From contig CM060732.1 of the NCBI GenBank assembly GCA_030704615.1, positions 5,704,001 through 5,768,000 of the forward strand: DNA of 64,000 bases. Direction: 5' to 3'. Position numbers and translations under genes: made by a program. Source of the stretch: Takakia lepidozioides. Taxonomy: Eukaryota; Plantae; Bryophyta. Positions within the stretch are counted from its first letter, which is position 1, and each line of letters begins with the position of its first letter. This document shows positions 27,400 through 55,200 of the stretch, one piece after another. The notes beneath the pieces were generated by a model. The model did not search any database. It saw nothing but the letters and a program-made list of their open reading frames with translations, and was not told the origin of the DNA.

Positions 27400-30300
27400 C
27401 ATTCGTTCGACCCTTCATCTCTTACCGAAGACGGGGTCCATCGTTTGAAGTCTCATGACTACCACAATATATTGCAGACATCTTGCCACTTGCAATATGT
27501 GGGACATTGACTACCGAGGTTTGCGAAGCAATCTATAGATTGGGAGCCTTATTCCGGTGGATTTGCTCCAAAGAGATGGGTGAAGCGGATTTTCCACGCA
27601 TGAAGGTGGAGGCAGCGGTGGTAATGTGTATGTTAGAGATGCACCTTTCTCCCTCCTTCTTTGGCACTTAGTGGAAGAGGCTTCAATTGTCAGCCCTATT
27701 CATTCTCAGTGGATATAATTCATTGAGCGTTATATGAAGAAAGTTGAAAGCACATGTAAGACAAATGGCGCACTCAGAGGGTAGCATGGGGGAGGGGGTA
27801 TACATTGTACGAAGCTATGTTCTATTGCATATTGTTCTATTGTTATTACATGGCAAGGGTGGATAAGGAAACACATCGGATATGGAAGGAAGACGAGGAT
27901 GTACAAACCAATGACATCGTTTTATCCAAGAATTTGAAGAGGATAAAACAACAGAGCATGGTGATTGAGCAAGCGCATGAGTTCATACTAAAGAATAGCC
28001 CATCTATACATGAGTGGGAGGCAAGATACAATAACCTTTTGAAGCGACGGGAGAAGAAGATTTCAGCATGGAGGCGCAATCATGCAAGGGAGGCTACAAC
28101 AATATGAGGTAGGGGTCTGAGTGTTTCTTCCAGAGATTTACCCATGGAATTGCAGCCTTTACGGTCATTTCGCCATTGGCTTCGAGATGGAATCGAAGAT
28201 ATAATTGCTCAAGGTGAGGTGGTTCCTGATTTGGTGCAAGACATTGCAAGGGACCCCTCTCAATTTTCTCTCTCATACACTTCAGTTTGCAGGGTCCACG
28301 GTCGTCATTTCCGTATTTGTGCTCTTGACATGAAGCGCAAAACAACCTTTGATTCCGGCTTGTGTGCAACATATTGGCAAGATTCCGTGTCAAGCACGAA
28401 AGACACAAGACTTATGCGGAGCAAACTTAAGTACATTGGAGAGCTTGAGAACATATTTCAACTTCAGTATACAAAGTATCAACCTCTTCTCTTCAAGGGA
28501 AGGTGGTTCCAACCACATCTTGTGGGGCCTTGTGCAACACTAAGGTAGAAACACCTAAAATGGAGGACATCCCAAAACGGACCCCTAGAAAAATACATAA
28601 AACTAACCATATGTCATCTCTAAAAGGTGCTTTGATCACAAGTGGTCCAAATTAGGTCATGTGGTGGGCCACAATGGAACTCCAATGAACCCTTTTAACT
28701 CATACATGATCATGATGACACCACTTAATGTACAAGTTAATAACCACCGGTGTGCACTTTGAGAGCAGTATCAAGTCATGAATGAGTTGAGAACGATCCA
28801 GGATTAAGTTTCATCCAAATGGACCTTGAGCTCAGTTTTCTTTAAGGTGGGAGGTTACTTTAAGGTCAATAAATAGTTATGTTAGTTGATGGTCCATGTT
28901 ACTATGTTGTTTAATCAGTAAAGTGAAAGAGGAGGCACACTCTTTGGGCACCTTTGGCTCCACACAGAGTGCACTTGCTGTTCAAAATAGTACCCTTTAC
29001 TGGTCCATACAAGGTTATTCCATGATTTCACATTGAATATTCACCAATATTACAAGATAATTCGGAAAATATTTATCTTTTTTGCATTAAATTTCATTTA
29101 TTTGTGCCCACATCAGAAAAATATATACGACGACACTGCACACCTGAAACTGCACACATTTCTTAAATGATCCATTTTAGGTGTTTCTACCTTAGTCCAA
29201 GATGAGTGTGGTTTCATGCACGTCAATGCGGACAAGCTCATGTCTACAATTTTGTATGTCTGATGAGCCTTTTGCGTGACCTTCAGACATAGAGCAAGCA
29301 TTTTTTTCCCAAGACAAAACAAGATCAGGAAATTGGAAAGTGGTTGTGCATGCCCAGCCAAGAGGAAGACGTATCTATCATGGTCACGGAGCTACATGGG
29401 GTGAGCCAAATGCGGAAGAGGAAGAGACTGATCATGATGATGAGCCCGATGCCAATGATGATGTTGGAGGATGGTTAGAGGAAATAGATGACAATGATGA
29501 TGCCTCAGCCAATTTTAACCGTAGATATGAAGGGGAGTCTGATGTTGGAGAAGGAGATGAAGACATGGGTGCCACCGACTATGAGATGGAAGATGCAAGT
29601 GATACCCCTCATGGCGGCCCAATAATGAATCAGATTCACATGAACCTTTAATTGCAAACGCGCCCATTAGTGAAGATGACTCTGGTAACCAGCAAGATTT
29701 GCAACTTGATGAGGATGAAGAACCACCGGATGAATGATCATAAATATTTATGCCCTCACAATGTACTTGACATTAATTGTATATCTCTTCTTTGTTATAG
29801 AGAACTCTCAAACTCTATCTCAATTGTTAATGTTTTTGTAAAGTGATTTATCTAGCTCTCCCCCTCCCCCATCCAACTAATATGCCATGTAGTCACTAGC
29901 TATGCCGCTCACGAGGACCTCCCTTTTTTACCTCCCTATCATTTTCCCGGCACCTACATTTCTAGCATCTCTCCCTTTATCCATGTTCATTGATCCCCCC
30001 TACCTTCTTCCATTAGTTTCCCAGTACTCCAGGCCCCAGCCGATCAACTTCAAATCCTCCCTCCCTCCCCCAAAAAAACTGATGCCTCACCTAGCGACCC
30101 CCAGGTGACGCTAAGGGCGGCAGAGCGTCGCAGTTACCAGAGCGACGCCACGGCGTCGTCTAACCCAAAACGCCGTTGGCAGTTTGCGATGCCCAGGCGT
30201 CGCAAGAACCCCAGACATGACTCTGATGTAGTGCAGCTGATGTAGTGTATACTGAGTAAGAGATTATAAATTCAGACAAAAGGAGCAGCAATCATCACAG

Positions 30301-30571
30301 GCAAGGCGATGGCTGGTGCGACGTCCGGACGTCGCGGCAACATTCAAAAAATTTAAAAAAGAAAAATCGCCACATGTTGCGACGTTGTGGCGTCGCATAA
30401 GGCAGCCGGCGGTGCAGGTCGACGTTGCGCCGTCGCAACCGCGACCACTCCAGCCACCCGCACACTTCTTGCGACGGACGGGCGTTGCAGATCATCCCGC
30501 GATGCCTCCGTTGTGGGCTGTTTGGGGCCACGACGGACGGGCGTCGTTAAGGCCCCTCTTTTGCAGTAGTG
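27400..30571 (+). mobile_element. CACTA (En/Spm) transposon right half: transposase remnant, CG-rich subterminal repeats and terminal ...GCAGTAGTG
   Basis: LKSHDYHNIL, LFRWICSKE, MLEMHLSPSFF, IERYMK (DUF4218-like). FDSG, YIGELENIFQLQY...PLLFKGRWF...DECGFMHVN (DUF4216-like). GCGACG/CGTCGC repeats at 30090-30550. The terminus reverse-complements to CACTACTGCAAAAGAGGGGCCTT. Confidence 0.85.
28543..29192 (+). mobile_element. 650-bp MITE, perfect 22-bp TIR, TA TSD, related to the pogo element at 14786-18078
   Basis: TA|AGGTAGAAACACCTAAAATGGA ... TCCATTTTAGGTGTTTCTACCT|TA. Removing it restores the CACTA frame (CATL-VQDECGF). The 3' ~320 bp aligns by eye with 17760-18078. Confidence 0.95.
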
Positions 30572-30880: not shown

Positions 30881-33700
30881 TTTATCAGGGGCTGTCATCG
30901 CTTCTTCACAGGTAGCAGGTTCTGTCAGTAAGGTTTCTCTTATCATGGCTTCAACGGCTATCATTGACGTGGCTTCATCCTCCTCTTCATCTTCAAGAGT
31001 ATGATATACTCCATCTTCAACCATAGGGAGATTTTCACATTCTTCTAATTCAAATTCCATTGAAATCTTGAGCATTAGGTGTTTTATCAGTAGACTGGAA
31101 GCTTGTCTCTTGACAGGATTCTTCTCCCACTCTTGGAAAAGTTGTACTTGTTTCATCAAAGACTACATCCCTACTGCTCTTGTAGGAGTTCTATTTTGAA
31201 GGTAGGTTGTAGTTCCCACTACTTCTGCCCAAAAGTAATTAGGCAGGTTAGCCTACTTGAGCATGCTCCTAGCACACTCTTGTGGAGACATGTTCTTCCG
31301 CTCTAACACCGTTTTATTCAGGTGTGTAGAGGACCGTTAATTGTCTCACTATACCGAAATATTTACAGAATTGATTGAAGGCATTTGAAATATACTCCCC
31401 TCCATTATCTGACCGTAGAGTTTTGAGGGTTTTCGGCCCCGTCTGTTTCTCTGTAAGAACCTCTTACTCTTTAAATTTGTGTAGTACTTGGTTTTTCTGT
31501 TTCAGAAAGTTGACTGTGGTTCTTCTTGAGACATCATCGATGAAGGTGACAAAATAGATGGCTCCCCGGAGCGACTTTGTCTGCATAGGGCCGCACACGG
31601 CTGAGTGCACAACCTCCAATAGACTCTCTACACATTGACCTCCATACTTTTGGAATTGTTGTCCGTGTTGTTTACCAAACTATTTCAGTTTCTAAGTGCT
31701 AACATGTCCTAGCCTTCTATGCTATAGTTTTGTTTCTGTCAACATAGTCCTCTCAGATTCTGTAGTAAGAGATCTCTTAACTGTACAAAAAATCTATAAC
31801 TTATATAGATTATTTTCCAGTATGGCATTTGCCACTACATTTCCTTGCTCATTTGAAATGACACATCGACTGTTCTGGAATAACACCTTATAACCAACTA
31901 CTACGATCCTTCTCACAGAAAGAAGGTTTTAGGTTGGGGGGAAATATGTAAGACATCTTCTATCTCTCTCATCTCATCCTTGTCTATCATGACTGACACA
32001 GTGCCCTCTCCACTAATAGGATGTTTACTGTCGTCACCTAAATATAACACATATGGAGTATGAGAAATAGTTCTGTATGTAAGAAAATTATCCTCGTCTG
32101 GGGTCCTATGTTGTCACGCCCCGGAGTCTATATACCATATGTCACTTTGACTATAAGATGTTAGAAGAGAGACTACATTAAATAACACAACATTATCCTT
32201 CCTAGTCATTTTTCTAATAGCTACTGTTGCTTGTGAATATTTACTGTCTCCATTTTGCTTTTCCTTCACTATTCGTTTTTTGCAGTCCTTGATCATATGA
32301 CCTAGTTTCTTGTAGTAGAAGCACTTTATTTTAGGCTTCATTTTATATCCAGACTCACTAGATTCTCCGAACTCTTGTTTTTTAGAGGACTTCCAAGCCT
32401 TTTTTTTATTACCAAACTTTCCAGAGAATATTGCATTATCTACTCCTGCAGATGTTTGGCATTTCCTTCTTATTTCCTCTTTGAGTAGTAGTCCTACGAT
32501 AGGTTTTTTTGCCCTATTAATGACACTACAAACCCATCATAAGATTCTGGTTATGAACCAAGCGACAAAATTGTTGTATGCTCGTCTGAAATTGAAGTTC
32601 ATATTGTTTCTAGCTGTCTTTTTAAGACATTGAAGGAATTTAAGTGTAATTCTACTTTCTGTTTCACTCATTTTTAGACTATAAAAATGAATAGGTGCAA
32701 ACACATTTGACGTGACGTCTTTGGTCTCAAATATTATGGCCAACTTGTCCCAAATTGCCATTAAGTGGTAGCACCTAGTTACCAAGTGCATTTGATTAAT
32801 TTCTCTTAGACTTGTTATATATGACGTGCTCTAGCTCTTTGATTTTTCATGTACCATGTAGGTGGGTACTAGCAGGATTGGGTGTCTCAAAAGCGGCAGA
32901 TGTTGAGTCCATGGAAAAAAAAACAAAAATCATCTTGTATTTTTATTTTATTTTAAAAACAATAGATAGTAGTATACCTAACATTTTTAGTAAAGAGTCC
33001 CAACCCAAATATTGAAGGCATTGTTTACTAGATATTTTAATATTTAATTTGAAAATATCAAAACTTAGAGTTTACAACCACTTGTCCATATACCACCTGA
33101 CACCTCTAGATTATAGGTTTGTATGTTTTTTTTATTAAAAGATGACATCCCAAAAATCCAAAACATAAAATGTTATGGATAATTTATTTTTTTAGGTATA
33201 AAATAGTCTATAGCTCTCAATACCTAAGGTAACTAGTCCATATAAAAATGGATTTGGATTGGTTTTTAAAATGGCACCCTTAGTATGTTTTCCATTCTGC
33301 CATTATATGAGTGTAGATGATGTTTTTTTAGTCCATAAGATTTCATATGTAACACCTGCAGTCCATATTAATCAATTTAAAAGTCCATAACTCTTTGGTA
33401 CATGATTGTTTTTGTAATCTAACAGTTGGTACACATACCTTTTGTAATTAGAAACCCTACACCATATAAACTTAGATGAAATATTGGGTTGTTGGACAAA
33501 TATGGGTAAAACCATAGAGGGATGTCACTGCAGAAACTACATGTTACGCAAAAACTGAGATACCCAATCCTGCAAATATTCAGGGTGAACATAGGTTGCG
33601 GCTGGCTTACTAGAGTGTCGTCAATTACTGACCGTAAATCTTTGTCTAGGAGGATCATCTGGATATCCGAGATTTCCAAGTATGGTAATTAGTCTCATCA
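30881..33700 (-). mobile_element. Ty1/copia remnant (gag, zinc knuckle, protease, integrase; RT absent)
   Basis: [80 protein letters not shown]. Confidence 0.9.
32873..33572. mobile_element. 700-bp non-coding TIR element inserted in copia gag
   Basis: CAGGATTGGGTGTCTCA ... TGAGATACCCAATCCTG (16/17 match). AT-rich interior. Removing it rejoins the gag frame. Confidence 0.8.
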
Positions 33701-34159
33701 AACCTATCTTCCACTCTAGCATCTAACGTGTTAAAGTTAGATCCTTGGTTGCCTGAACCTGAAGGAGGTGATGATGTCATGAAAGTCTACTCTCACCAAT
33801 TACAGGAGATGGATTCTCTCATTGGATTCTCTCTCCATATTGTAATTATGTAGCTGAATGTTTGTATGGATGAAAGATCCTCAAATATTGAAAGACTTGA
33901 AAATTACAATGTTTCCCCAATGTTTCATGCCAGTGCTGACAAAATTCTTCGCACCTTAGTTTATAAGATGTTGATGTAAACTCAAAACTATCATCAACGA
34001 TTCTATTGCAATAAAAATGAAGAAGCTACCTTCAGCCAAAGTCGGCATAAACAAATATCACTTCATCATTCGGCTACGGCCTTTTATTGCAGATGCGTCA
34101 TCTCAAATCCCCTACAATAAAAGTAGAAATGTCGTTGTCCACTTTTAACGAATACAATG

Positions 34160-36800
34160 TTGTCATATGATCAAAGACTGCAGAAAACGTATAGCGGATG
34201 AAAAGCAAAATGGAGACAGTCAAGATTCACAAGCAACAGTAGCTACTAGAAAAATGACTAGAAAAGACTGTGTTGTGTTATTTGTAGTCTCCCTTTCAGC
34301 TTCTAGTCAAAGTGACATATGGTATGTAGACTCTGGGGCGTCACAGTATATGACCCCAGACAAAGATAATTTCTTACATATAAAACTATTTCTCCTACTC
34401 AATATGTGTTATTAGGTGATGTCAGTACACATCCTATTAGTGTGTCAGTCATGATAGACAAGGGTGAGATGAGAGATAGAAGATGTCTTACATGTTCCCT
34501 CCCTTACCAAAAACCTTCTTTCTGTGAGAAGGATCGTAGTAGCTGGTTATGAGGTGTTATTTTAGAAGAGTCCGCGATGGGTCATTTCAAATGAGCAAAG
34601 AAATGTAGTGGAAAGTGCCATACTGAAAAATGATGATCTACATAACTTATAGATTTTTTGTACACTTAAGAGAGCTCTTACTACAAAATCTGAGAGGATT
34701 ATGTGAGAAACAGAACAATGGCATAGAAGACTAGGACATATTAGCACTGAGAAACTGAAACAGTTGAAAGAGTTACACCTAGTGGAAGGGCTCTCATTAA
34801 AGGAGGTAGAACATACCCGAAATAGAATAACCAAGTACTAGCTAGACAAGTTTAAAGAGTACAAGGTTCTTATACAGAAACAGATGGGGAAAACCCTCAA
34901 AACTCTAAGGTCAGATAATGGAGGGGAGTATATTTCAAATTCCTTCAATCAATACTGTAAACAAAACACTAAACAAAACGGTGTTGTAGAGAGGAAGAAC
35001 AGGTCTTTACAAGAGTGTGCTAGGCGCAGGCTCATGAAGCAGGCTAACCTGCCTAATTACTTTTGGGCAGAAGTAGTGGGAACTGCAACCTACCTTAAAA
35101 AACAACTCCTACAAGAGCAGTCTCAGGAATGACTTCAGAAGAAGTGTGGACAGGTGTGAAGCCAAGTATTTCACACTCTAAGGTATTTGGGTGTCGAGCC
35201 TATGCTCATATCCCAAAAAAAAAAAAAAAAAAAAAAAAAATTGGATTCAAATTTTGAAGCGTGCATTTTCGTAGGCTATACTGAAGGAGTTAAAGGATAT
35301 AAAATGCTTAAGGAGAAAACAAAGAGTATATTTCATAGTAGGGATGTAGTCTTTTATGAAGCAAGTACAGCTTTTCCAAGAGTGGGAGAAGAACCCAGTC
35401 AAGAGATAAGCTTCCAGTCTACTGAATATAAGACACCTAATGAATTTCAATGGAATCTGAAGAAGAACGTGAAAATCTTCTTATGGTATTCTTGAAGTTG
35501 AAGTAGATCATATTCTTGAAGATGAAGAAGAGTATGAAGCTAGTGAGGAACGAGTAAGTCTACTTCTACAAAGATCACAAATGGAGAGAAAAATTGATAA
35601 GAGGCTTATCACGTCAATGACAGTTGTTGAAGCCATGAGAGGAGAAACCTTATTGACACTACCAGCCCCTGATAAGATTATGTGGGAGCAGGCAATAAAC
35701 TCTGAATTCAATTTGCTAATACAAAATGAAACATGGTCACTTACCTGCGCATAGGACGTAAAGTTGTTGGGTGCAAATGGATCTTTAAGATCAAGCTAAA
35801 GTCTGATGGGAGTGTTCACAAGTATAAAGCCCAGCTGGTTGCTGAGGGTTTCTCACAGGTGCAAGGTGTTGACTACAACATACGACACTTTTTCACTTAT
35901 TGTAAAAATCATTTCAATAAGAGTATTTTAATGACATTGGCAGCCAAGCATGATTTTGATGTCCATCAAATGGATATTAAAACAACGTTCCTCAATGGCT
36001 ACCGACAAAAGACCATTTATATGGACCAGCCTCAAGGTTTTATCAAACCAGAGACTAAAGACAAAGTCTGTAAGTTACATAACACTTTATGGGCTCAAAC
36101 AATCTCCGAGAGCATGGTACGAAAGGATTGATACTTTTCTTCTAACATATGGATTTAAGAAGAGTGTTGCAAATACAAACTTGTATATTCTTACACAAGG
36201 AAGTCGATTGGTAATATTGGCTTTATATGTGGATGACGCTATGTTGGTCAGCAATAAGCCCCCAAGTTTGCGTGGGCCCTGTCCATTAGAGGGTGGTCCA
36301 GGAATTAAAAAACGACGGTATAGTAAGCTAAACAAGGTTTTGAATTAATAACCGTCATGCAAGGGGGTAAGAAAAAAGAAGGTAGGAAGGCGACAAGTAT
36401 TAAATGGGGGATGGTTCAGGCGCCAAATTGGGCTAAGCAGGTGTCACGTGCTGGTTTGTAAAAGTGACATGTGTACCAGGGCAGCCTTCTAGAAGGGTCC
36501 CACTGCCTTAAGAGGGTATATAAAGGAAAGGCACCCTCTCTTCCCCTGCATCTTAACTACTTACTAAGTTAGTACTCTGCACAGACAGGGCCCTAAGAAA
36601 AATGTAAACATGAACCCTAGATGTATTAATTAATAGGGACAGTGCGCTCATTAAGGAATAAGGGGTCAAGGATTAATACTGCAGTTCAAGGATAAACTGT
36701 CCAAGGAGTTTTCCATGACTGATATGGGTGGAGCTTTGTCTTGGTCAAACAAGAGACAAACTGCAACAAAGCTTTCATCAACGGAAGCATAATACATGGC
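34160..36800 (+). mobile_element. Ty1/copia remnant (zinc knuckle to RNaseH, internal deletions), same family as 30881-33700 but inverted
   Basis: [53 protein letters not shown]...YKAQLVAEGFSQ, HQMDIKTTFLNG, LYGLKQSPRAWY, LYVDD, LSWSNKRQ. Confidence 0.92.
36259..36668. mobile_element. ~410-bp non-coding insertion interrupting copia RT
   Basis: RT reads LYVDDAMLVSNK, then resumes as ILQFKDKLSKEFSMTDMG after about 36670. Only weak inverted ends (GCCCC...CTGTCC / GGACAG...GGGGTC). Confidence 0.55.
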
Positions 36801-39011
36801 ATGCATTCCCTACATTTTGGAAGAAGGACCCTTTGGAAACTTTGGATAAGATTGGAACTTCCGGGATGGGTTCAGTGCAAATTTGCCAAATAGGATTAGA
36901 GAAGCTATATCAATGTGTGTAAGCTGTGGAACATAGGTGTCCCCATAAATGAGCAACCATGGCACCTGATGTTCAAGTTGTACGGCATGGATACTGCCAA
37001 CAATGGGCGAGGGGTGCTTGCACTCTACGAGAAAGAGGTAGACTCAAGTAGACTCAACCTAATTCGTACCTCACTTTGCAAACAAGTAAATTCTTCAATA
37101 ATGCATTCTCTGAGCTCAGAGATGCATTTTGGAAAAAATGTGTACTCACTGATCGTGAATGTTGGTGCGTCGATCTATCCTTGAGAGCATAGTTTGCAGA
37201 GAATAACACCCATCTTGATGTTGGTTGGCGCGTGAGTACACCTTGGTACATGTGATTGACCAAGATATTGGTAATATCACTCCGGAACCACCTGCTATCA
37301 TCTCATTTAAGGGGTCACTCAAGTGCATGGTTCTAAGATCTGAAATTTCAAATTGTACCGAAACTCACTGTTTATTCTATGGCTACCAAACTTGTGTGGC
37401 CCTCATTATAGTTACAATCGGATTAAACACTATACTAATTAGGTATGTCTATACGTGTATAAGTGAGCTTATCTGGATCATGGGTCCTTTTTCGAGCTAG
37501 AGTGAAGTATATCCACGAAAATTTCAAAGGCTAAGGCACACCTATCTACTTGGGGAAACTCTGCAAGAGCACGCCATAGTCAATCAATGGGTGGAAGTGG
37601 AGGCCCGAAACTTCAATGCTGCAACTGCAGAAATACTGGGGTGGGCTCGAGGGGCTCTTTCATCCCTCATCTTTGCTTGTGGGCTCTTTCAGCATCCTTC
37701 TCTAGGTAAATCCACTACAGTCCAACAATAAACCAAATGTTGGCTTCAAGAAGCGGTTTCTTGAACCACCCGACCAAGCCCGAGCTTCTATCCATCGCAT
37801 CTATCATCAAAGGTATCAATCTCATCAATCTCTCTATTGTATCCATCAATCTATCCTCAGTCCTGAAGCTCAAGCTGGAGTCTTTGCTGCTTCCCTTTAC
37901 ATAGCTAACTAGTTGCCGCGACCTGGGATATATCCAATTGTTGACCACATCATCTCTCCTGTTCACCACTGTGCTTCCTCGACGGTTGGTTATTTGTCAG
38001 AGGTACTCGTGGATTTGAGGCGCCTGTCCAGAGCTTCAACCTCACTTCTTTGCATGAGATTTCCATCCATCAAAAAGAACACGTGCCAAAGAGTTTCATC
38101 AACGAATTTGGTATTCAATTTCATGTCTTAAGACTGTCCTATGGCTTTTATGTTCAATGTCAAGATTCATAGTTCATACGCCTACAACGCTTACACGGCC
38201 ATCTCACGTGAGTATGTCGTGCTCACATGCTCACGTTTGCGCTCATGCAATGGCTTGAGCATTTCTCATCAATAAGACCACCGTACTAATCACTTCTTGT
38301 CAAGACACAGTGTTTCAATACAAATAAGAGGCAATGAAGATGATTGTGAGGTTCAGCCCATGGGGGGTTGGTAGGGCCCTGCAGCCTCCGCATACCTGAC
38401 GAGGCACGGACAAACCCCCGCATGTACATTCAGCAGTAGCATAATTAAATAGGTGACCTCTAAAATTATATGTTACCTCAGATCTACATTTTAACTGCCT
38501 ACATAATCATTTTTTTCACACCAAAATGATATTACCTAATATGAGTAGAATCAGCCTATATACCAAGATTTTTTTTCATAGAAGTGGCAAACTGAGGAAA
38601 AACACAAGTGACGTTCCATGGGTGAAGGTCAAAGGCAGGCAAAATTGACTGCCTGACAAGGCAGTGGATTCGGAAGGTCTTGTGGAAATTTTGCAAGTAC
38701 TCACAGTTTAGTGTAGTATATAAGGTGTTGGGTGGTCACTAAGCTCAACAATCTTGTGCTAGCTTACTCAATAGTGTGGGTTCTATAGAGGTTCCTGGAA
38801 GAGCATTTGCGCTTAAAAGGCACGTCGTCTCTCCTTCATAACGTGCAGGCACGATCGCTGTCAATCTGAAGCTCAAGCAGTGCTTCTCTTAGTTCTTCAC
38901 TGACCATTAATGATCATATGTAAATCTTAGCTCATGTAGTCAATTGAGAACTGCTATGTGGTACTCCTCATCCGCCTGCACTGAGATTTTGGAGGGGTAA
39001 TGTAGTCATCT

Positions 39012-39750
39012 CACTATAGGAAAAGGGGGGCCTTTGCAACGCCCAGGCCACGCCGCGACGTCGGGAAAACGCCCATTTCGGGCACGGGGCAGGCACCGTT
39101 TTTACGACGCCCAGTCGTCCACGGGCGTCGCCAAAAAAACGTTGCAAAAATGCGACGTATGGGGATCGCGAGCCCCCGCCCCAACTCCCGTGACTGCCGG
39201 ACGTCGCTTTTCGGGCTGTCCACGCCGATGGCAGGGGCCTCCTGCGAGCGACGACTCGCCGTCGCTGCCCTCTAGCCGACGGCATTGGTGGGGGCGACGG
39301 CGTGGCGTCGCAACCCCTTTTTTTTCTAACCTGCCCGGGAGTCTCATCCTAAAACCCAAAAACACGTGGCGTAAGCCGGGTGGTACGCCAAGCGACGTCA
39401 GTACGTTGCTGCAAGCGACTATTGGGCGTGGCCAAAAAAAAAAAACAGCAGGAGCTGGAGTCGGGCTCGGCGACGCTAGGGCGTGGGTTCCCGCGACGCT
39501 CTGGTGTCGCTTTCTTTATAATCAATCAAGAAATAAAAACACGTAGCGCAAGCAGGGTGGTGGGATCCACGACGCCAGGGCATCGCGGCTTGCGACCCCC
39601 GGACCAAAAAAACCCGTCGCAGGGGGGGTCAGGCATTGCTACCTGCATTGGTATTTGCGACGCCCGGCCGTCGCGGCTTGCGACCCCGCAAAAAAAACAC
39701 GTCGCCAATACCGACGCCCTGCCGTCGCGAGGCCAGCCTGGTGGGGGAGG
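39012..39750 (+). mobile_element. CACTA-type left terminus with CG-rich subterminal repeat array
   Basis: CACTATAGGAAAAGGGGGGCCTT closely resembles the inverted terminus at 30571. Dozens of GCGACG/CGTCGC-type motifs occur in both orientations. Confidence 0.85.
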
Positions 39751-39759
39751 TTTACTATT

Positions 39760-39820
39760 GCATGAGCAGAAACCATGAGCCATGAGCCATGAGCCATGAG
39801 CCGCATGAGCCGCATGAGTG
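39760..39820 (+). repeat. Tandem (CATGAGC)n repeat; the motif recurs at 41254-41300
   Basis: CATGAGCCATGAGCCATGAGCCATGAGCCGCATGAGCCGCATGAG. Confidence 0.9.
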
Positions 39821-40673
39821 GTGAGCCGAAGTCTAAGACACGCGGATTTCATGAGCAGACTCCTCCAAATTTGGAAATGCAGCAGCTTATACTTCACCGC
39901 ATTACAGGATCTGGAACTTCCAAAAATGGCAAGGTCAAATTAAAAAACTATTATTTTAATACTTGTCCCGAGAAGCCTTTTTTTCTACCAGCCTATGCAG
40001 ACACGGCTGCCAGAGAAGCCATTAGGAGGGAGGATAGGCCTACTCGGTATGTCGTCAGTAACAAGTCCGCTCATGGTTTTTTAGATCCGCTCATGGAAAT
40101 GAGTGACCGTGCAACAAGAAATCCAGTATACCACGGCAAAAGGACGTCGCATACTGGCCTGTATAGAGTATTCCGCGGTTTTACATGCCTTAACATTGGA
40201 ATGAAGCTGACCCTTTTGCCGCGATTGAACCAATAGAGTATGCAATACTTCACAATTTTGTCATCTTCGGGTATTCGGCGGGAAAGATTTGCGACTCAAC
40301 TGGGAAATGCGGTGCCGCATTAGGATTCACACGTGCGAAATTTCTAGGCGGTTTGGTGTTGGCGAAGGCCGCATCTACCAGTACCTACGACGTTACTTGG
40401 AAATGCGGTGCCGCATTTCCTTGCCGGGGGTCGAATGAGGAAATCAAAGTTTGGGAGAGCAGAAAAACAGGAACCCTCCAACACACAAAAATACATGCAC
40501 GTGGAAACACAAGTGAATGACATAGTATTATCTTAGTTCGAGCAAAACAGATTACTGGTAGGCAAGACATAAGTCAGACCTTTCTGTGGCCAGAGTCAGA
40601 GCTACTTGCAGCAGTACAGTTCTACTATCCGAAAAGGATGGGCGTACCATTGTGTTGGGACCGCAAGCCAAGC

Positions 40674-40885
40674 TCACTGATCCCCTGGATCCATATTCAG
40701 AAGAGTGTGCACCTCTTGGGGGCTCAACCCTAGTGCATGTATGAAGTGATGAGTTGTGGAATTACACCGGAGTCTCTTTAGGTACACGTAGTACAGATGC
40801 TCGCAAGGGCAGTATGATGCCCCTTTGTTCGCCATGATCTGGAAGTCGGTGCAATTGCAGGTGGGTAATTCTGAAATGGTGATTC
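40674..40885 (-). pseudogene. SWIM zinc-finger coding remnant (absent from the ORF track)
   Basis: ITISELPTCNCTDFQIMANKGASYCPCEHLYYVYLKRLRCNSTTHHFIHALGLSPQEVHTLLN (CxC...CxH). Paralogous to 62432-62700. Confidence 0.8.
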
Positions 40886-41638
40886 ATCGTCCACATCAAC
40901 AATGATCTCCTTCATTTGCCCCGAAGGGATCTCATCCGCTACACTTTGCATCTTCTCCTGCAGACGATGGCGTTTTGAGCATGGCAGACAGGCTATGTGG
41001 CCCAATTTCTCATCAGAAAACAAGCAGTGTGGGGGCTGAAAATACTGTGCGTTGCCGCACAATGTTTCAGCTTCCAAATAGTGGTGTTTTGAACATGATA
41101 TTTGGCCCTATGTGGCACATTTCCACCAAAAAAACAGGCAGAGAGGGGGCCAAAAAGGGGGCACAAACAGTGTGAGTTGCCGCACACTCTTCGTGCTACC
41201 AACTATGGGTGTTTTGAGCATGCATACTGGCCCTGTTTGGGGGGCTGCTATTTCATGAGCGGCATGAGCATGAGCGGGAAAAAAAAAAAGCATGAGCGGG
41301 CCATTGTGTGTCCACGGAAATAGGGTTAGGAGGCACGGAAATAGGGTCATGTGGACTCGTCATAGCAATGAAATGTAACATTTTATTACAAATTTTGTGG
41401 CAAGCCACGTCTATACAAGTGTGTCCTAACTGACATAGCAGGAATGGGAACTTTTCTCCTACACCTTCCGAGGAACTTGGCCCTCCTTCTTCCTAATCCC
41501 CCTCATCCCCCCCATCCTCCGAGCTCTGTGATGCATCGGTTGCACTATGCCTCTCAAAAATTCCGTCCTCTCCTTGGGGGACTGTCCACCTCACTTCCTG
41601 GGAATCTTCTGCCTCTTCTCCCCCACTTTCCTCCTTCA

Positions 41639-43730
41639 GAGAGTTCAGCAAGGATGCTGGCATCAGTCGAACAAATGAGCTTGACCAGCAAGAGAAAGGA
41701 GAGGAAGCCTGGAAACGATGCCTTTACACGTGCGAAATGGACTGTGCTTCTTTGTTTTGCATAGACACAATCTCCTCCATCCAACCTGTTTTTGGCTGGC
41801 TCATATGAATTTGTGGTGGAGTGTAATGTGTCGCATACTCTTTTAGGGGGTCTTCGTGATGGGGTGGAAAAGCTGGGAGACAATATTTGCATTGCATAAT
41901 AAGGTTGTCTCTGTTCCTGCAGGTACATAAAGTATGTTCTCATGGCAGAGAACTGCTTGGACAAACATCTTGATTTCGTGGACCTTTGGCTTGTCCCTGC
42001 TGGCAACCAGACCATGTTTACTACGGGGATCTTGCATGACTGGGGCCCAGACCATCTTTCTGCTTGTGGTTGGTATTTGGATTGCCCTGCTTCAGAGACC
42101 CCAGCTCAGGAGGTGTCTTTGAGGAGAGAGAATGAGCGTATAGCAGCTACCGCCGCAGCAGCCGACCTCGACATTCATGAGAGAAATTTGAGGACTCTTG
42201 CAGAGAAGGAGCCTCTCGCTCAGGAGACACCGGGTAAAGGTAGAAAGGCAAAGGGAAAGGATGTTGTTGGTGGTGTGGGGAAAGGAAGGGGTAGGGGGAA
42301 GGGGGCACAAGGGCAGGTGGGTGGGCAGGGAAGTGTTGCAGATACTGGCCCTCTGGTGGTTGTTCAGCAGACTCCACCGCATGGTAGGGGATCCGGGAGA
42401 AAGAACAAGGGGGTGGTTGATCCCAAGGACCCGTACTATGCAGTGGAGCATCCCACGAGGGTCATTCGCCCTACCAGGTTGGAGATGGCCAACGTCGGGT
42501 TCCTTGCCATGATGGAGTCCAGGAAATCTGATTACAAGGGCGAACCATCACCAGTGTGGGAGAGGATTGTGGAGTTCCTGGGCATGGTGCGTGTTGTCTT
42601 TTGCTTCTTGTCTGTTGTGTGCATGGATCGTTTCAATCCTCTTGAGCATTCCATTGCATGCTTGTTTGCAGGCTAAAATGACCAAATCCTGGGTGAACGG
42701 GAAGGAGAAGCCATATGCAGCCGAACTCATCATCTTGGACATCCCTGATGGGTTGCCAGTCCCGGATGTCCCTCCATTGGGTGCTTGTCCAGGTTGGAAT
42801 GCTTTTGATGAGCGGTATTGGCGGTGGATTTTCTCCTTTTGCAATTTCTTTCTGTCCGATGCAGGTGTTTTGGTGCTCATCCAGTCCATCGACCTTTGTT
42901 GTCGCCGTGCACTTGCCAGCTATTTGAAAGCCTCCGGTATGAGGGTCGTGAAGACATGGAATTGTGTGAACAGCATGTACCTGACGAAGGGGGATCGTCC
43001 CGGAGAGATGGTAAATCTGCCTTCTTATTCCTCTTCTTGGTGGTTCTCGGATGGAGTTGCATAAGTCGCTCAAATGAATATGTAGGGGCCTGGTTTTCAA
43101 GCGTCTTAGTTCCTTGTGTATGTCCTGTTCGCAGACTCGTTTGTTTGAAGTTTTTTGTCTCGTCCGAGTGCATCCACCTACGACTCCAGCTGTCATTAGG
43201 GAGTTCGCCATCACTCACGGGGGCAAGCTCATAGACGAGAGGACAGATCCTCCCATGGATGACATGCACCACAACTACGTGGACAACAACGTGTGCTTGC
43301 GAAGGGGGAATGGGGTTCCTTGGAGAGGGGCCAGGGAGAGGAGCCCGACTTTCATTCAGACGATTGTGGAGTGCTACACCTACACAGTCGCCAGAGTTCT
43401 GGATTTGTCAATGGGCACAGGTTCGTCTCTTCAACATTCACATTTCGTGAGGTTTGTTTGACCTTGCACTTTCAGCTCTTCCCACAGTTCCAAATGTGTC
43501 TTCAATGTATGTTTCCTTCATTGTATTCCACTGCAGGTGCCTCGTACCACGCTTGCAAGGCCAGTGCGCGACATCTCTTTGGGATTGAAGGGGATGCTGA
43601 GATTTACAAGAACCTCCTGATGGGTTTGGGTGGACACACTTCTCAAGTCCTTCCGAAGCCCCTACCCGCTGATATTGATACAGGGGAGACTTCCGACAAG
43701 GAGCTGGATGATGACTTTGCCTGTGAGTAA
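41639..43730 (+). CDS. Spliced beta-class amino (N4-cytosine/N6-adenine) DNA methyltransferase-like protein; exons ~41639-41729, 41923-42586, 42672-43010, 43135-43420, 43537-43730; 5' end unresolved
   Basis: Four phase-compatible GT-AG introns give a stop-free product. It has motif IV-like AELIILDIPDG, then FLSDAGVLVL, then C-terminal motif X-I-II GARERSPTFIQTIVECYT...RVLDLSMGT|GASYHACKASARHLFGIEGDAEIY. Compare the consensus KP..L...I...T..GD.VLDPF.GSG.T..A....GR...G.E....Y. Confidence 0.78.
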
Positions 43731-44759
43731 GTTCAACCTGTGGATGCTTGCATTGTTGTTTCAATACCCAGAATCACTGTTCTTAAGGCAAAGTGCACAT
43801 GGGAGATATCCTCTTCGTTGGACTTGTGCATTGCGTCAGAATCGCATTCCTCTTGGCAATTGTGCACTGGTGTCGTTTATGTCTCTACATTTTCTTCATG
43901 CACAAACAACCTTGATGCCACTCGCATATTGTTTGCAACTAAACCAGGATTGGTTTCCTCTTCAGGCTGTTGTTGCAAAGAGACGGCAAATTTGCAACTT
44001 GGTCATGGCAGAGCTGGAAGGCCGAGCAGGATATGGCCTCCCCTATGCACGACCACCATATGTCCGGCCTGTGCGGGAGGTTGTGGGAGTGTCTTCCACC
44101 CACCGTTCGCGGCCTAGGACAAGGTCAAAGAACCCCCATCCCAGAAGACTGTGACTGCCGTGGCATTTGTGGACTCATTCACCTTCCTATTTTTATACTC
44201 TTTCCCCTTCAATGTGTACTCTCCTCCCCATTGTTTGGGCATTCCTCGCTTGTAAGTATTCAAAATTGGTTTTTGTCCACTTGTGCAGGAGTCCGCGTGC
44301 TTCCACTGACCCTCCAGGGCTATCACACATTTTTGGACTTCTTTCAAGTCCTCCTCAGTCTTACGTCCTACCTGTCTATGCGGAGGCACTCGCAGCAAGC
44401 ATGTCCATTCATGGCACTCGCAGTCCAACCATCGACGGCCGTGGTAGAAGACGTGGTGTTGGGGCCGGAATCTTTGTGGATGACATAGCACAGGAGGTCG
44501 ATACTGATTCTGATGACTGTAACACTTGATATGAAGTTTTCTTTTGCTTTCATTCGGGGCCAATTTTGAAATGGGATGGTTGTGTGTCCTTGTTGTCATG
44601 TTTGCAATGTGTGCGTGGGATGCAAATTCATGGGAACAAACTGTCGTTGGAGATGGGGGTTGCATGGACTACCCGGATTGTTCCTTCAATCTATTTAGTG
44701 TTTTGCGGAGCTCATAGGCTTGTGTGCATTGCAAAAACAAACAAACGTCTTTGGTTCGG

Positions 44760-45480
44760 GTAGAGCATTCTCGCATCATTTGCTCGTTGGTCTCCAAACC
44801 ATTCGACAGAGTGCTTACCGGACCTGCACCACCCGACACAGGGTTCACGAAGCATTGGTCAAGGTACAAATCAATGTAATGAGTTGTGAAGAGGCCACAT
44901 TCCTATGTGGAGGATTGCTGGGGAATTGGGGGGCACACCCATCGCATAGTTTCGGTGGCCTCCACCCACCTTGGGTCTGGAGGGTGGAATCCTCTTACCA
45001 TAGCCCAGAATCTAGCAAACAATGGCTTCAACCTCTTGTGTTTGTGCATGTTTTTGATGCTATTCAAGTGAAGGTGGCGCATGGGTTCCATTATTACGAC
45101 ACTCCAGTGGGTGCTGCACAATACATGCAGACTTTCAGCATCGTCATATCCACGAAACACACGATTCCAAAATGCGTATGGAAGCGAGACAAAGGGGCAG
45201 GGTGTGCAGAAAACTCACTTAGAAGTAACAGGGACAATGAGCGCTTCCACACCAACACAATTCAGGGTAGGGAATCGTCTGTCCATCCAAGTCTGTATGG
45301 ACTCAACTGTTGTCCCATATGCACTGCAATGGTCCCGAAGACAAATCCAAGTGAAAGTGTCTAGAAATCGCACTTTACTGCGTACAGTGGTAGGGAGGGA
45401 AAGTGTTTTGCAAGAAACCCAAAAGTCCATGAGGCGGTCACTTGTCCAGCCCCTTGCATGTCCCGGGCCTCATTTATCAC
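44760..45480 (-). pseudogene. Ulp1-like SUMO protease (peptidase C48) remnant with intron 45218-45114
   Basis: FLDTFTW...ALIVPVTSN|THWSVVIM...HLNS...PPIPQQSST*ECGLF. The catalytic His, oxyanion Gln and Cys are present. There is one in-frame TAG, and Asn sits at the Asp position. Confidence 0.8.
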
Positions 45481-46719: not shown

Positions 46720-47733
46720 TCAGAAAAGAGGTGTGCAGGAGAGGGTGGAGGGGTCCCAGAGAGCAGGCAGCAAATACTTGCGGTCGTTGACGCCTTCTGC
46801 GTTATAGCTCGCACCAGAGATCGTCTCAACTAACAGATGCCCTGGATAGCCAGGATACGCCCCCTCTCCATAAATACCAGTGCACGCTGTGGCTGCCTCT
46901 AATGGAAGAGCTGCATCACCCTGGTAGTAACCACTGATGAAGGGGTCTGTGGCTGTGCCAGCTAGCATGCTCGCAATATTGATGATCATGCCATCCACAC
47001 CAACATCCGCATTCGGAGGAATCAGAGCCTTGGCTCCCTGAGGCCCATACTGAGGCAGAGCAAAAGGCCATGCGCATTGACCTGGACATTGCGTGGCCGA
47101 GTTGCCGATCCAGGCATACGGCAGCTGCTGGCCCTTAGTGATGAGTGCTGGTGAGGTGAAAAAATGGGAGGCGCATCTGCTTCTGCAGAATTCATCCACA
47201 TAGACAGCGTCAGATGTGAGGACAACATAGACTGCCTTGGAGTCAGTGGGGAATGTGGCCAGCGACTTGAGCACCAAGGATTCTATGTCACACATTTTGA
47301 GTTTCCTTCCAAGGGAGTAGTCGCTATCAGACACCTCACCACCCAGCTGGACTGTTGTCATTACACCTGAATTTAAAGCATCCTTGTACCCGGCGGTCAA
47401 CTTCCACCAGCTATTCACCGAGGGATGATCCTCGGGCGACTCTTGGAAGGAGGCGAAAAAGTCCCCAATGGTAGAGCGCTGCGCAGAGCTGAAACTCCCA
47501 TACCAGACAACGTATGCTCGGAGGCTGGAGCTGCCAGACAGCAGGGGCCCACTATGGTAAGGCAGAATGAGAGGGGAGCTCACTAGAGTCGACAGCTTAC
47601 GCACTCTATGTGGGGCATCCTCTGAATCGAGAATGGAGAAGAGTGGGGGAGAAGGCCGAGCTTCCACCACGGAAGCAACGCAGCAGAGTAGATGAGTCAA
47701 CATGGCCAGAACCACGAAAGTTTGGAAGGCCAT
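46720..47733 (-). CDS. EXORDIUM / PHI-1 (phosphate-induced 1) family secreted protein, intronless
   Basis: Signal peptide; LPYHSGPLLSG, WYGSFS..QRSTIGDF, PSVNSWWK, VYVVLTSDAV.VDEFC..RCASH, YAWIGNSATQCPGQCAWPF, PPNADVGVDGMIINIA, PLEAATACTGIYG.GAYPGYPG, LLPALWDP. Confidence 0.97.
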   Translation of the reverse strand: MAFQTFVVLAMLTHLLCCVASVVEARPSPPLFSILDSEDAPHRVRKLSTLVSSPLILPYHSGPLLSGSSSLRAYVVWYGSFSSAQRSTIGDFFASFQESPEDHPSVNSWWKLTAGYKDALNSGVMTTVQLGGEVSDSDYSLGRKLKMCDIESLVLKSLATFPTDSKAVYVVLTSDAVYVDEFCRSRCASHFFTSPALITKGQQLPYAWIGNSATQCPGQCAWPFALPQYGPQGAKALIPPNADVGVDGMIINIASMLAGTATDPFISGYYQGDAALPLEAATACTGIYGEGAYPGYPGHLLVETISGASYNAEGVNDRKYLLPALWDPSTLSCTPLF

Positions 47734-49904: not shown

Positions 49905-50620
49905 AGGCCACGCCGCGGAGTCGATAAACCCCCCGTTTCGGGCAGCGGGTTGCGACGCCGATTTTGCGATGTCCGGGTGTCGCACGAGCGTCGCCAAAAA
50001 AACGTCGCAAATATGCGACGTATGGGGGTCGCGGACCCCCCCCCCCGCAACGCACGGACGTCACTTTTTAGGCGGTCCATGGCGATGGCAGGGGCCTCCT
50101 GCTAGCGACGCTCGGCCGTCGTTGCCCTCCAGCCGACAGCATTGGAGGGGGCGACGGCTCGGCGTCGCACCAATTTTTTTTCTAAATTGCCCGTGTGTCG
50201 CATCCTAGAAACAAAAAACACGTGGTGTACGCCGGGTGGTAGAATAAGCGACGCCGCTGCGTCGCGGCTAACGACTCCTGGGCGTGGCAACGAAAAAAAA
50301 CCCGTCACTGCTGGAGTCGGGCGTTGCGACGCTCGGCCGTGGGTTTCCGCGACGTGCTGGCGTCGCTTTCCAGATTTTCAATTTATAAAAATAAATAAAA
50401 CACGTGGTGCAGGCAGGCTGTTGGATCCGCGGCGTCGCTGCTAGCAACCCCCGGACTAAAAAAAAACCCGTTGCTAGGGGGGGGTCGGGCGTTGCTACCG
50501 GCATTGGTATTTGCAACGCCCGATCGTTGTTGCTTGCGACCCCTGCCAAAAAAACCCGTTGCCAATACCGACGCCCTGCCGTCGCAAGGCCGGCCTGGTG
50601 GGGGGGGGGGGGGGGGGGGA
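49905..50620 (+). mobile_element. Second copy of the CACTA left subterminal array (terminal CACTA missing)
   Basis: Colinear with 39045-39747. Shared stretches include GGCCACGCCGCG, TGCGACGTATGGGG, GATGGCAGGGGCCTCCTGC, GCATTGGTATTTGC and GCCAATACCGACGCCCTGCCGTCGC, ending in CCTGGTGGGGG. Confidence 0.88.
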
Positions 50621-50842
50621 TTGGGGGTTGATTTTGGGGTGAATTGGGGGTGTGGTTTGTTTTTCCCCTGGTTTTGTTTTGTGTTCGGAGACCTTACAGC
50701 TTCCATTGCTCTGATTTAGTGTTAGAGGACTGTAGGGGACTTAGACACTTATACGGGATCTGTAGGGTACCCTTAATTTTTGCACAGACTGAGACCAACA
50801 GGAGCCTTAGGGGTGACAGCAGCGCACTGTAGAGGGGGGTTA

Positions 50843-51135
50843 CACAGCCCGTCACAGTCGTCACAGTCGACACAGCCAACACAGCCCGTCACAGTCGTCA
50901 CAGCCGACACAGCCAACACAGCCCGTCACAGTCGTCACAGCCGACACAACCAACACAGCCCGTCACAGTCGTCACAGCAGACACAGCCGACACAGCCACA
51001 CAGCCACACAGCCAGTCACAGCCCGACACAGCCAAACACAGTCGCATAGCCAGTCACAGCCGTCACAGTTTCGCACAGCCAGTCACAGCCCGTCACAGTT
51101 TCACACAGCCAGTCACAGCTTGACACAGCTGTCAC
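50843..51135 (+). repeat. Degenerate tandem array of CACAG(C/T)C units in the putative 5' LTR
   Basis: (CACAGCCCGTCACAGTCGTCACAGCCGACACAGCCAA)-like units. Confidence 0.93.
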
Positions 51136-52250: not shown

Positions 52251-55200
52251 CGGAGACTTCAAGTATAGCCAAGGGAGCATTGAAGCTTGAAAGAAACCCA
52301 GGCATATACGAGAGATATTACAGAAGAGAGTTTTGGTTATTGCCACATTAAAAGAAATGAAAGACATGGGACATGAGTGATGAAAGAGAAGCTAGACGAC
52401 AGAGATATTCAGCAAAAAGAGAAAGCTATCTGAAAGCTAATTATCCATATCTTTGGGAGAGAGGAATAGACATAGGGGAATCATCTGGACCTCTCACACC
52501 ATCAAGATCAAAAAGTGCATCACCTATACCGGAAGAACAAGAGTTGGATGCCACTCCTTCTGTTTCTTTGCAAGAAAGATTAAGGGAATTGGTACAGGAA
52601 GAAGATCAATCACGAGGTGAAAGATCTGAGGTACATCCTTGGATAAAAGACTTGATAGAAATCTTTGATAAGAGTTGGCATGGAACACCAAAAGCAGGAA
52701 CTCCAGTTTCTGAAGCAGAAGATGAAAAGGAGAAGAGATGTGGCAGAGCCAACGGAGAGTTCAGACTCTCCAACACCATTACAGTTGAGTTACATGAGTG
52801 AAGAAGAAACCCAAGGGCAGAACTTGGAGGATGAAAACAGAGAGAAGAAATTAGAAGAGGAAGAATATGAAGAAGTAGACCCAACAGCTGAGGTTGAGAC
52901 TACAACCAGGACATCCCAACCCGTTGGACCTGGATCAAGTGGAGCACTTGGATCACAGGCCAACGAAGGTGTCGGCTCAGGGGGATCAGGTGGGCTGCCT
53001 GGATCTGGCTCTGGGGGGACAGGAGTGTGGGAAGTAGTGCAACTGAAGCTGGGAATACTGTGAATATCGTGGGGCCAGAAGCAAGGAGTGCTCAAGGGCC
53101 ACCACTTGGTGGAAGATCCACCACAAAAACACCAGGTCCAGAAGGACCAGCACCAGCAAGGGTGCCAGCACCTGTCAGTGGGCAGAAGGTAGGGCCACAG
53201 ATGGCGTTACAACCAACACGGGCAAAACCACCCTTTCCAATATATTCAGGAAAAGGGGATCCCGATGTACACATTAGCCAATTTGAGCACATGTATATAG
53301 TGAACAATGAGAATGGCGATGATGCCAAGATGAGACTGTTTCCTTGTTCACTTATCAAGAAAGCAAGTGAATGGTATGCAAGATTCCCTGATAATCATTT
53401 CCTAACCTGGAATGGCTTGAATACAGCATTTCGAAATAGGTTCAGGACAAGTAAAACTGAGGATGAAGTGTATGGAAGTTTACAACAGCTGAAGCAGAAG
53501 AAGCATGAAACTGTTGAAGAGTATATGGAGAAGATGGAATTGATGATGAAAAAGCTGGCTACAGTACCAGCACCCGGGTTACAGAAGACTTGGTTTGTGA
53601 GTGGACTAAGACCAGAGTTGCAAAAGAAAGTGGATATGTTACCCCATAACACAGTGGAGGAGGCATTTGAAACTGCGAACAGAATTGAGCAATTGGGAAT
53701 GCTCAGGAGAGAGAAAAAGAAGATGAGGACTCTGAGGATGAGTCAGATGAAGAAGAAGAGCAAGAACTAAAAAGAAAGAGTAAGAGAAAGGAGAAGTTGA
53801 AGAGGGATAACTATGAAAAAAAAATTGGAAGAAATCTTGAAGAAGTATGCCACAGAGGCTGCAACACATTGGAGGAAGGGTGTATAGTGTGCAAAGGCCA
53901 TACCACCACAGAATGCCACATGAAGGAGAAACACTGTACTATCTGTAAAATGGATAACCATTCTACTGAGAATTGTTACTACAACAGAAGGACAGCTGCA
54001 AGAGAACCTAGGCAAGTAAGGGTGCATCAGGTGCAGCCCCAGCCAGAAATAATGATCAGGACCACTATGGTAGGTCTGGTGGTTATAACAATGGCATGGA
54101 AGGGAGAGGTAATTCAAGAGGGAATTACCAAGGAAATTCCAGAGGCAACTATCAGGGTAATCCAAGGGGGAATTACCAGCCGGGAATCAGGATTATAGAA
54201 ATAATCCAAGAACAGACCAAGGGCGAGGACCCAATGGTGAAGAGCTATGTTACTATTGTAATCAGCCAGGACATCGCAAGGCAGCCTGTTCATTCTGGAT
54301 AAGACACCAGAATGAGATGAGAGCTCCTGTGAATGAGGGCCCAGTGGTGGCAGCTCACATGGTTAGGCATGTGTTTGTACCAGAAGTAAGTACAATGATA
54401 GTAACAAGAAGTAAAGCCAAACTAATACCTCCAGTAGAAGAGGAAGAAGATGAGACTGGAAGTGGCAATGATATGCCTGAAGATGAAGAGACTTGGAAAG
54501 ATGAGAAGGAACTGCACAAGGAAGTGGCAGATACTATAAGGGAAATGCAAAAGAGTACTGATATTCCTGTGGCAGATTCCTCTGATTCGGATGGAGAAAA
54601 AGAAGGGAGTGAGGAAAGAAAAAGGAAAAAAGAAGATGCAGACATGCAAAGTAATGAAGAGACTTTGGCTGCAGTAATATGTCAGACCAAAGCAGAAATT
54701 ACCATTGGACAGCTATTAGCTGTGGCACCTTATTGTAGGCACAGGCTGTATCAAGCAATCAATCGAATTGCCCAAAGAGACAGGAAACACAGACCTGAAC
54801 AGCAAGGTGACCAGTTATAATGTGAAGCCAGAAGGCGAGAACCAGTCATGGACTTTGATGATTCTATGCCAGTAATCCAATTGAGAATTGGAAGCACAGA
54901 ACTAACTGATGTACTGATAGATGGTGGTTCTGGAGTAAATATCATGACAGACCAATTAAGAAAGAAGCTTGGTCTAAGTAACATGAAACCAGCCCCATTT
55001 ACAGTAACAATGGCAGATCAAAGAAGTGTGCAGCCATTGGGATTAATAAGAGGAGTTAAGATACAGATACAGAAAATGATCTTTATGATCACAGTAACTG
55101 TATTAAAAATGGATGAAGTCATGGAGGCTTACTCCTTATTATTGGGACGTCCGTGGCTGAAACAGGCCAGGGTATTCCATGACTGGAATTCTCAGTTACT

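Follow-up and report, generated by a model that had tools for sequence, protein, structure and literature searches.

Do land-plant DNA transposons carry methyltransferases of bacterial type, and would the encoded proteins still methylate DNA? This question is raised by an intron-containing gene at positions 41640-43730 of a 64,000-nucleotide stretch of the moss Takakia lepidozioides (contig CM060732.1, forward-strand positions 5,704,001 to 5,768,000), to which we refer as the window. A sequence-only reading of this stretch had described the gene as a beta-class amino-methyltransferase (amino-MTase) borne by a transposon. On balance, and with appreciable reserve, we favor a reading in which the gene is a 5'-incomplete copy of a transposon-accessory family that has the beta-class MTase fold and would not act as an ordinary base methylase.

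The window gene is a copy of an unnamed gene family

The locus is one member of a gene family, unnamed and multi-copy, that occurs in moss-type plants. All homology searches were made exon by exon. Searches of Pfam and of PDB sequences with single window exons gave no match, and a family profile is therefore needed to see the signal. With exon 3 as the phmmer query against 1.84 billion representatives, 86 proteins were recovered at E <= 1e-3, the best of them at 1.9e-21. A family hidden Markov model (HMM) built without the window matched exon 3 over model positions 31-128 (E 1.2e-18), exon 4 over positions 137-228 (E 2.9e-8) and exon 5 over positions 232-275 (E 1.6e-5), with E-values computed at Z = 1e6. 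Taken together, the matches of exon 3 and the adjacent model positions of the three exons place the similarity far beyond chance. One could still argue from the blank single-exon searches that the exons are a chance open frame or a set of wrongly joined open reading frames (ORFs). However, three exons match the family independently, significantly and in the correct order, which refutes this explanation and leaves it with virtually no credence.

The family comprises 86 representatives at 50% identity. It has no Pfam name and is annotated as "hypothetical protein" at most, which is also the label carried by its two members in Ceratodon purpureus, KAG0605740 and KAG0624017. The long members, namely P0082 (596 amino acids), P0054 (494), P0040 (430), P0008 (424), P0009 (399) and P0034 (367), together with the two Ceratodon proteins, are collinear with exons 1 to 5 of the window gene. 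When exon 2, residues 310-596 of P0082 and the family alignment A1 were used as word-index protein queries, P0109 was the sole addition.

Structure of the window gene

The sequence-only reading had joined five exons across four phase-compatible GT-AG introns into a stop-free gene. When coordinates, phases and frame were re-read from the sequence this structure was confirmed, with junctions that are predicted and backed by relatives (Table 1). The introns measure 193, 85, 124 and 116 nt and lie in phases 2, 0, 0 and 1; all four start with GT and end in a pyrimidine tract followed by CAG. None of these lengths is a multiple of three, and in a scripted frame check the read-through of each intron met an in-frame stop, while the spliced frame is open over 523 codons.

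Comparison with relatives was informative along the whole gene. Exon 1 aligned with residues 72-99 of P0109, immediately before the block matched by exon 2, and exon 2 itself matched P0090, P0054 and P0109 in tblastn searches (E 3e-9 to 2e-5) and is collinear with relatives in two family alignments. At the alignment column of the exon 3/exon 4 junction, 52 of 78 family rows go on with Val, the residue that a GTN donor would give if translated, followed by unrelated sequence; 10 uninterrupted members go on with a homologous T-x-L-F block. These rows point to a shared intron position, so that the junction is supported by relatives. The last intron, in phase 1, splits motif I, which binds S-adenosylmethionine (SAM), as had been claimed: it divides the Gly codon of M-G-T-G-A-S. 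The same codon is interrupted in L001, and the intron is read through in P0009.

The family has a beta-class methyltransferase fold

For the family, we regard the beta-class amino-MTase fold and its permuted motif order as established, because profile matches and the structural matches of a predicted model agree on them; the window copy is assigned the fold through its membership in the family. The family-domain profile matched M1.HpyAVI (5hek) at 4.5e-8 and CcrM (6pbd) at 9.4e-6 in the PDB. The CcrM match spans the whole MTase domain and is collinear with CcrM residues 15-250. In this alignment, family D-l-i-i-a-D-i-P-e-g-L falls on DLIFADPPYNL, and family V-V-D-x-x-A-x-T-G-A ... A-L-E-x-D falls on VILDPFFGVGTT ... 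IGIE. The place of HPTQKP in CcrM is occupied by a PWRG-x-R-E-K-D block, represented by PWRGARE in exon 4 of the window gene. Matches to Pfam PF01555 (N6_N4_Mtase) lay below threshold for P0082 (4.1e-4, 20.8 bits) and P0059 (0.015, 15.7 bits); the gathering cut-off of 26.7 bits was reached by no tested sequence, and eight other members and the window exons gave no match.

The fold was modelled on a natural full-length relative, P0082, in place of the window protein. The AlphaFold (AF2) model of P0082 residues 300-596, made from a 93-row alignment, had a predicted local distance difference test score (pLDDT) of 77.4 and a predicted template modelling score (pTM) of 0.75. A Foldseek search with this model gave 2.2e-10, and its top 40 matches were without exception beta-class DNA amino-MTases. 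VIA-align gave a Z score of 17.0 for CcrM (206 residues, 3.6 A), followed by M.BceJIV (16.6), the bdelloid N4CMT (16.2), M.MboIIA (16.1) and M.PvuII (15.6), with merely Z 10-12 for the eukaryotic MT-A70 clade. The ten nearest clusters in the ESM Atlas are all PF01555. Profile, model and atlas neighbours thus bear out the description of an intron-containing, beta-class amino-MTase-like gene, and the Rossmann-type fold of the M.MboIIA and M.PvuII kind that had been anticipated was recovered for P0082.

In the window gene, motif IV (exon 3) stands N-terminal to SAM motif I (exons 4 and 5), which is the permuted order. LIILDIPD is encoded at 42726-42749, with D-I-P-D at 42738-42749. Its position ahead of VLDLSMGT stands as first described, although the distance, given earlier as about 170 amino acids, is about 180 residues when re-measured.

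Compared with the bacterial beta-class enzymes (CcrM, M1.HpyAVI, M.BceJIV, M.MboIIA, M.RsrI and M.PvuII), the family has the same fold and the same permuted order, with Z scores of 14-17 over about 180-206 residues, and it retains Gly in motif I, the acidic residue in motif II and Asp in motif IV. It differs from them in motif IV, where bacterial (D/S/N)-P-P-(Y/F/W) stands against D-[IVL]-P-[E/D], and in the exchange of HPTQKP for the PWRG block. Unlike the bacterial enzymes, moreover, the family is eukaryotic and intron-bearing, combines a long N-terminal region with a basic linker, and falls under the Pfam cut-off.

Motif IV is altered throughout the family

Motif IV was tallied over 92 aligned members. 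Its first position is D in 73 and E in 10 of them, and its second is I, V or L; the third is P in 78. The fourth position, which is aromatic in the bacterial enzymes, is E in 51 members and D in 28, and Y, F or W in none. It is followed by G (61/92) or N (24/92) and then by L-P-V-P, giving a family consensus of D-[IVL]-P-[E/D]-[G/N]-L-P-V-P, for which the window has D-I-P-D. A P-x-W-N motif downstream is near-invariant. The sequence-only reading had noted that DIPD is one base from DIPY and that this copy might consequently be altered or dead. Because the acidic residue is found family-wide, a one-base lesion is ruled out as the origin of the window motif. Our literature search found no paper on a D-x-P-[E/D] family.

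The putative SAM-binding half is conserved in the family, in its D-x-x-x-G/S-T-G motif, its motif II acidic residue and its PWRG-x-R-E-K-D block. Of 19 family rows, 18 have the second Gly of motif I (the window has G-T-G), and every row that extends far enough keeps the acidic residue that follows strand 2.

The mechanism described for amino-MTases assigns the holding of the target amino group to a polar residue and a Pro-Pro peptide bond, and stacking on the flipped base to the aromatic residue; disruptions of the METTL14 type are treated as inactive (Iyer et al. 2016). Given this mechanism and the lack of an aromatic residue in motif IV, the family is probably not an ordinary N6-adenine/N4-cytosine DNA methylase, and its members may be either non-catalytic subunits or proteins with an altered substrate.

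A competing explanation is that the family is an active N6-methyladenine (6mA) or N4-methylcytosine (4mC) DNA methylase that, carried on a transposon, marks its own DNA or opposes silencing by 5-methylcytosine, with D-x-P-[E/D] as a workable variant. Fold and SAM-binding motifs are retained, and motif IV has not decayed but shows strong conservation, since D (73/92), P (78/92) and E/D (79/92) dominate its positions. Furthermore, self-modification of the element has been proposed for the MTase genes of algal transposons (Petroll et al. 2025; Dinatale et al. 2025). However, the polar residue, the Pro-Pro bond and the aromatic form the catalytic set, and the family has replaced the first Pro in addition to losing the base-stacking aromatic. 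Marchantia DN4MT1a/b and the bdelloid N4CMT are one close comparison, being likewise eukaryotic, intron-containing, beta-class and of bacterial ancestry. Both keep an SPPY-type motif IV (TSPPY in DN4MT1) and have shown 4mC activity, in contrast to the D-I-P-D or D-x-P-[E/D] of the family. We consider an active DNA methylase unlikely.

The window copy is probably truncated at its N-terminus

Relatives have a conserved domain of about 110 residues upstream of the MTase-like domain, found in Ceratodon and in L009. In L009, a metagenome contig, the interval 4918-5235 encodes a homologue of residues 1-109 in the Ceratodon protein (31% identity, E 1.8e-14). A further conserved upstream block, Q-Y-V-E-K-W-R-V ... 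L-L-Y-R-Y, is also present in relatives; the window keeps just its tail, in exon 1. The AF2 model of the family N-terminal region was poor (pLDDT 65.8) and gave no fold match, and an atlas feature search with this region was blank. A ParB-like N-terminal domain had been suggested as a possibility to check; a Pfam search of ten family members and of N-terminal parts found neither a ParB nor a SET domain.

The sequence-only reading had held that the N-terminus is truncated and the start codon missing, and our results agree. The frame check found no in-frame ATG upstream of exon 1, and neither the family N-terminal HMM, run in six frames, nor tblastn gave a match over 36000-41700. An ATG-initiated ORF at 39796-40236, which showed weak collinearity with the Ceratodon protein (E 8-13), was tried as the N-terminus and rejected on an hhalign probability of 0.6%. 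The window copy is thus without the first roughly 150-200 residues of the family and without a start codon, and for this reason it probably no longer makes the full protein and would represent a truncated relic.

An AG acceptor stands before exon 1, and at least one further upstream exon is therefore expected. This good acceptor, together with 523 stop-free codons that would be unexpected in an old dead copy, speaks for a complete and fully expressed gene whose first exons and start are either located further upstream or so diverged as to escape recognition. However, the N-terminal HMM was blank over the interval in question, the one candidate ORF failed, and the transposon end at 39012 restricts the space available. 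A complete copy is accordingly quite improbable in our estimate.

Transposon context of the window gene

The gene lies 2.6 kb inside a CACTA-type left end at 39012 (Table 1). The subterminal module of this end has a CpG observed/expected ratio of 1.14, versus 0.4-0.6 in the gene. A direct copy of the module, 78.5% identical to 39045-39750, lies downstream of the gene; beyond this copy come a poly-G run and a 9/28-nt tandem array at 50805-51026. The terminal inverted repeat (TIR)-type pattern has two matches in the window against 0.01 expected. The second match, at 30549-30571, faces away from the first and would therefore be part of another element copy to the left and not the partner of the 39012 end. 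Altogether, 36 of the 45 GCGACG/CGTCGC hexamers in the window fall in the three terminal modules.

In Ceratodon, the family genes lie within large repeated DNA. Around the family genes, the loci L002 and L003, which lie on two chromosomes, are 97.6-99.8% identical over more than 15 kb. Metagenome and Logan data also contain many near-identical family copies: 15 members make up the P0040 cluster, and L005 matches L006 at 98.6% identity, flanks included. In the contigs of relatives L007, L008 and L009 no transposase was found, and a retrotransposon gag alone was detected.

Three further observations concern the Ceratodon locus L002. Within the repeat that holds the family gene, an ORF at 14957-15433 (minus strand) of L002 encodes a Cauli_VI domain, the N-terminal domain of RNase H1 (9e-17), and a tandem array with steps of about 138 nt occupies L002 7033-7482. 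The Ceratodon ORF L002:8226-9239 was considered as ParB-like and set aside, being without Pfam or PDB support.

Evidence for and against a transposon cargo gene

Transposon-cargo status of the gene in the window is probable. The transposon context first proposed for it is partly supported: a CACTA left end with subterminal repeats was found 2.6 kb upstream, and a right end, a target-site duplication and a CACTA transposase were not recovered in the window. Several points, which we gather here, weigh against the reading that we favor. No right CACTA end was found between 43.7 and 49.9 kb, which leaves no 3-bp target-site duplication to be read, and no CACTA transposase domain was found among the tested window ORFs. 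An EXORDIUM host gene lies 3 kb downstream of the MTase-like gene. Given these findings, the gene could merely adjoin a solo terminal fragment. The Ceratodon repeat has a sharp right edge, but this edge does not end in TAGTG. The predicted fold comes from the relative P0082 and not from the window's own protein. With its conserved acidic residue, motif IV could yet allow catalysis on a substrate of some kind, and "non-catalytic" is our deduction from the motif. Finally, the ratio of nonsynonymous to synonymous substitution rates (dN/dS) is 0.79 for the close pair L005 and L006, which shows no constraint between its two sequences but has too few differences for this value to carry weight.

A competing possibility is that the gene belongs to a host family, ordinary or domesticated, with the adjoining CACTA end a coincidence. 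Such a family would fit the conservation of intron positions over many lineages and the annotation of two Ceratodon members as genes, as well as the nearby host gene and the missing transposase and right end in the window. However, ordinary host genes are difficult to reconcile with Ceratodon copies embedded in long near-identical DNA on different chromosomes, or with the many near-identical copies whose identity extends into the flanks. We judge a host gene family decidedly improbable and retain the transposon-accessory family as our preferred reading.

Possible role of the family protein

Horizontally acquired amino-MTases had been described as confined to a few eukaryotes, with bdelloids and Marchantia as the examples. 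This view is outdated: eukaryotes have made at least six acquisitions of amino-MTases (Iyer et al. 2016), and algal transposons were added in 2025. Land plants are thought to hold few amino-MTases (Iyer et al. 2016), Marchantia DN4MT1 being the known functional case. In giant algal transposons, amino-MTase accessory genes have been found and proposed to bind and modify their own element; they include Plavaka PAG2 (an N6-adenine methylase with SET) in Bostrychia, and a ParB plus N4C/N6A MTase in Ectocarpus Sola1-1 (Petroll et al. 2025; Dinatale et al. 2025).

By analogy with these Plavaka and Sola genes, the family gene may be an accessory (cargo) gene of DNA transposons. Compared by description, the two groups would be alike in an amino-MTase-type domain carried on CACTA/EnSpm-superfamily or other large elements, beside repeated inverted-repeat sites. 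They differ in that the algal PAG2 and ParB-MTase proteins are fused to SET or ParB, neither of which was detected in the window family, and in the host, here a moss-type land plant. DN4MT1 and N4CMT, in contrast, are host genes and not transposon cargo, N4CMT having a chromodomain.

The predicted family protein consists of a conserved N-terminal region, a basic linker and, at its C-terminal end, a homologue of the bacterial CcrM/M.MboIIA/M.PvuII type of MTase domain, and judged from its sequence the product may bind both SAM and DNA. Lacking the base-stacking aromatic, it would not be an ordinary N6-adenine/N4-cytosine methylase and is more likely to serve as a subunit that is non-catalytic or re-targeted, the part played by METTL14 and the ciliate MTA9 for their partners. 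These two proteins keep the MTase fold with a disrupted strand-4 motif, and they offer a functional parallel for a subunit that binds substrate without catalysis, although they belong to a different clade, MT-A70 (Z 10-12 to the P0082 model). Such a subunit could recognize element DNA, perhaps at the GCGACG/CGTCGC subterminal sites.

Two more specific versions may be put forward tentatively, although we think it unlikely that they are correct: bryophyte DNA transposons might have turned the beta-class fold to another use, either as a SAM-sensing, sequence-specific DNA-binding subunit that recognizes the subterminal GCGACG/CGTCGC palindromes of its element in the manner of TnpA, or as a methylase of a non-nucleobase substrate in which the acidic residue of D-x-P-[E/D] replaces base stacking.

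If the family is indeed transposon cargo, the idea that transposon accessory proteins bind or modify their own element would extend from algae to land plants. The value of the present analysis rests with the family and less with the window locus: it is unannotated, widespread and linked to large repeated DNA, its ancestry is clearly bacterial beta-class, its introns are conserved, and its catalytic motif is changed throughout. The Ceratodon genes provide testable proteins, and knock-outs and long-read methylation calls are routine in moss models.

Other features of the window

The coordinates of the exons, the transposon termini and the remaining features of the window are collected in Table 1. 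Among these features, the EXORDIUM/Phi_1-like gene identifies the DNA as that of a land plant or streptophyte.

Table 1. Exons of the methyltransferase-like gene and other features, in window positions
Feature	Position	Strand	Description
Exon 1	41640-41729	+	Partial 5' exon, frame 1, ending in ..AWKRCLY plus 2 bases
Exon 2	41923-42586	+	Conserved N-terminal block (..FT..HL..CGWYLDCP), basic G/K-rich linker, start of MTase-like domain
Exon 3	42672-43010	+	Strand 4 with motif IV, P-x-W-N motif, strands 5 to 7 of the catalytic half
Exon 4	43135-43420	+	Variable target-recognition-like stretch, PWRGARE block, start of motif I (D-L-S-M-G-T, 43402-43419)
Exon 5	43537-43730	+	Remainder of motif I (G-A-S), motif II F-G-I-E-G-D, acidic tail, stop at 43728-43730
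CACTA-type left terminus CACTATAGGAAAAGGGGGGCCTT and CpG-rich subterminal module	39012-39750	+	About 740 nt, GCGACG/CGTCGC inverted pairs
Second, direct copy of subterminal module	49905-50607	+	Without the outermost 33 nt
Second terminus of same TIR type CACTACTGCAAAAGAGGGGCCTT	30549-30571	-	Own GCGACG/CGTCGC-rich stretch, 30060-30571
EXORDIUM/Phi_1-like host gene	46720-47733	-	Intact, single exon, Pfam E 8.9e-109
DDE_1 transposase fragment	16192-16884		
Ty3-type gag	53027-53770		
Peptidase_M28 host-like ORF	24802-26214	-	

On the minus strand at 44672-45214, a series HW ... NS ... QQ ... ECG that resembles an Ulp1/C48 protease can be seen by eye, with one in-frame stop in its core; Pfam gave no Ulp1 or SWIM support on the tested window ORFs, including two pieces of this interval. 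Upstream of the gene, eight long inverted-repeat pairs are nested within 31087-35425, with arms of 60-122 nt that are 87-96% complementary, and have the appearance of a foldback-like element.

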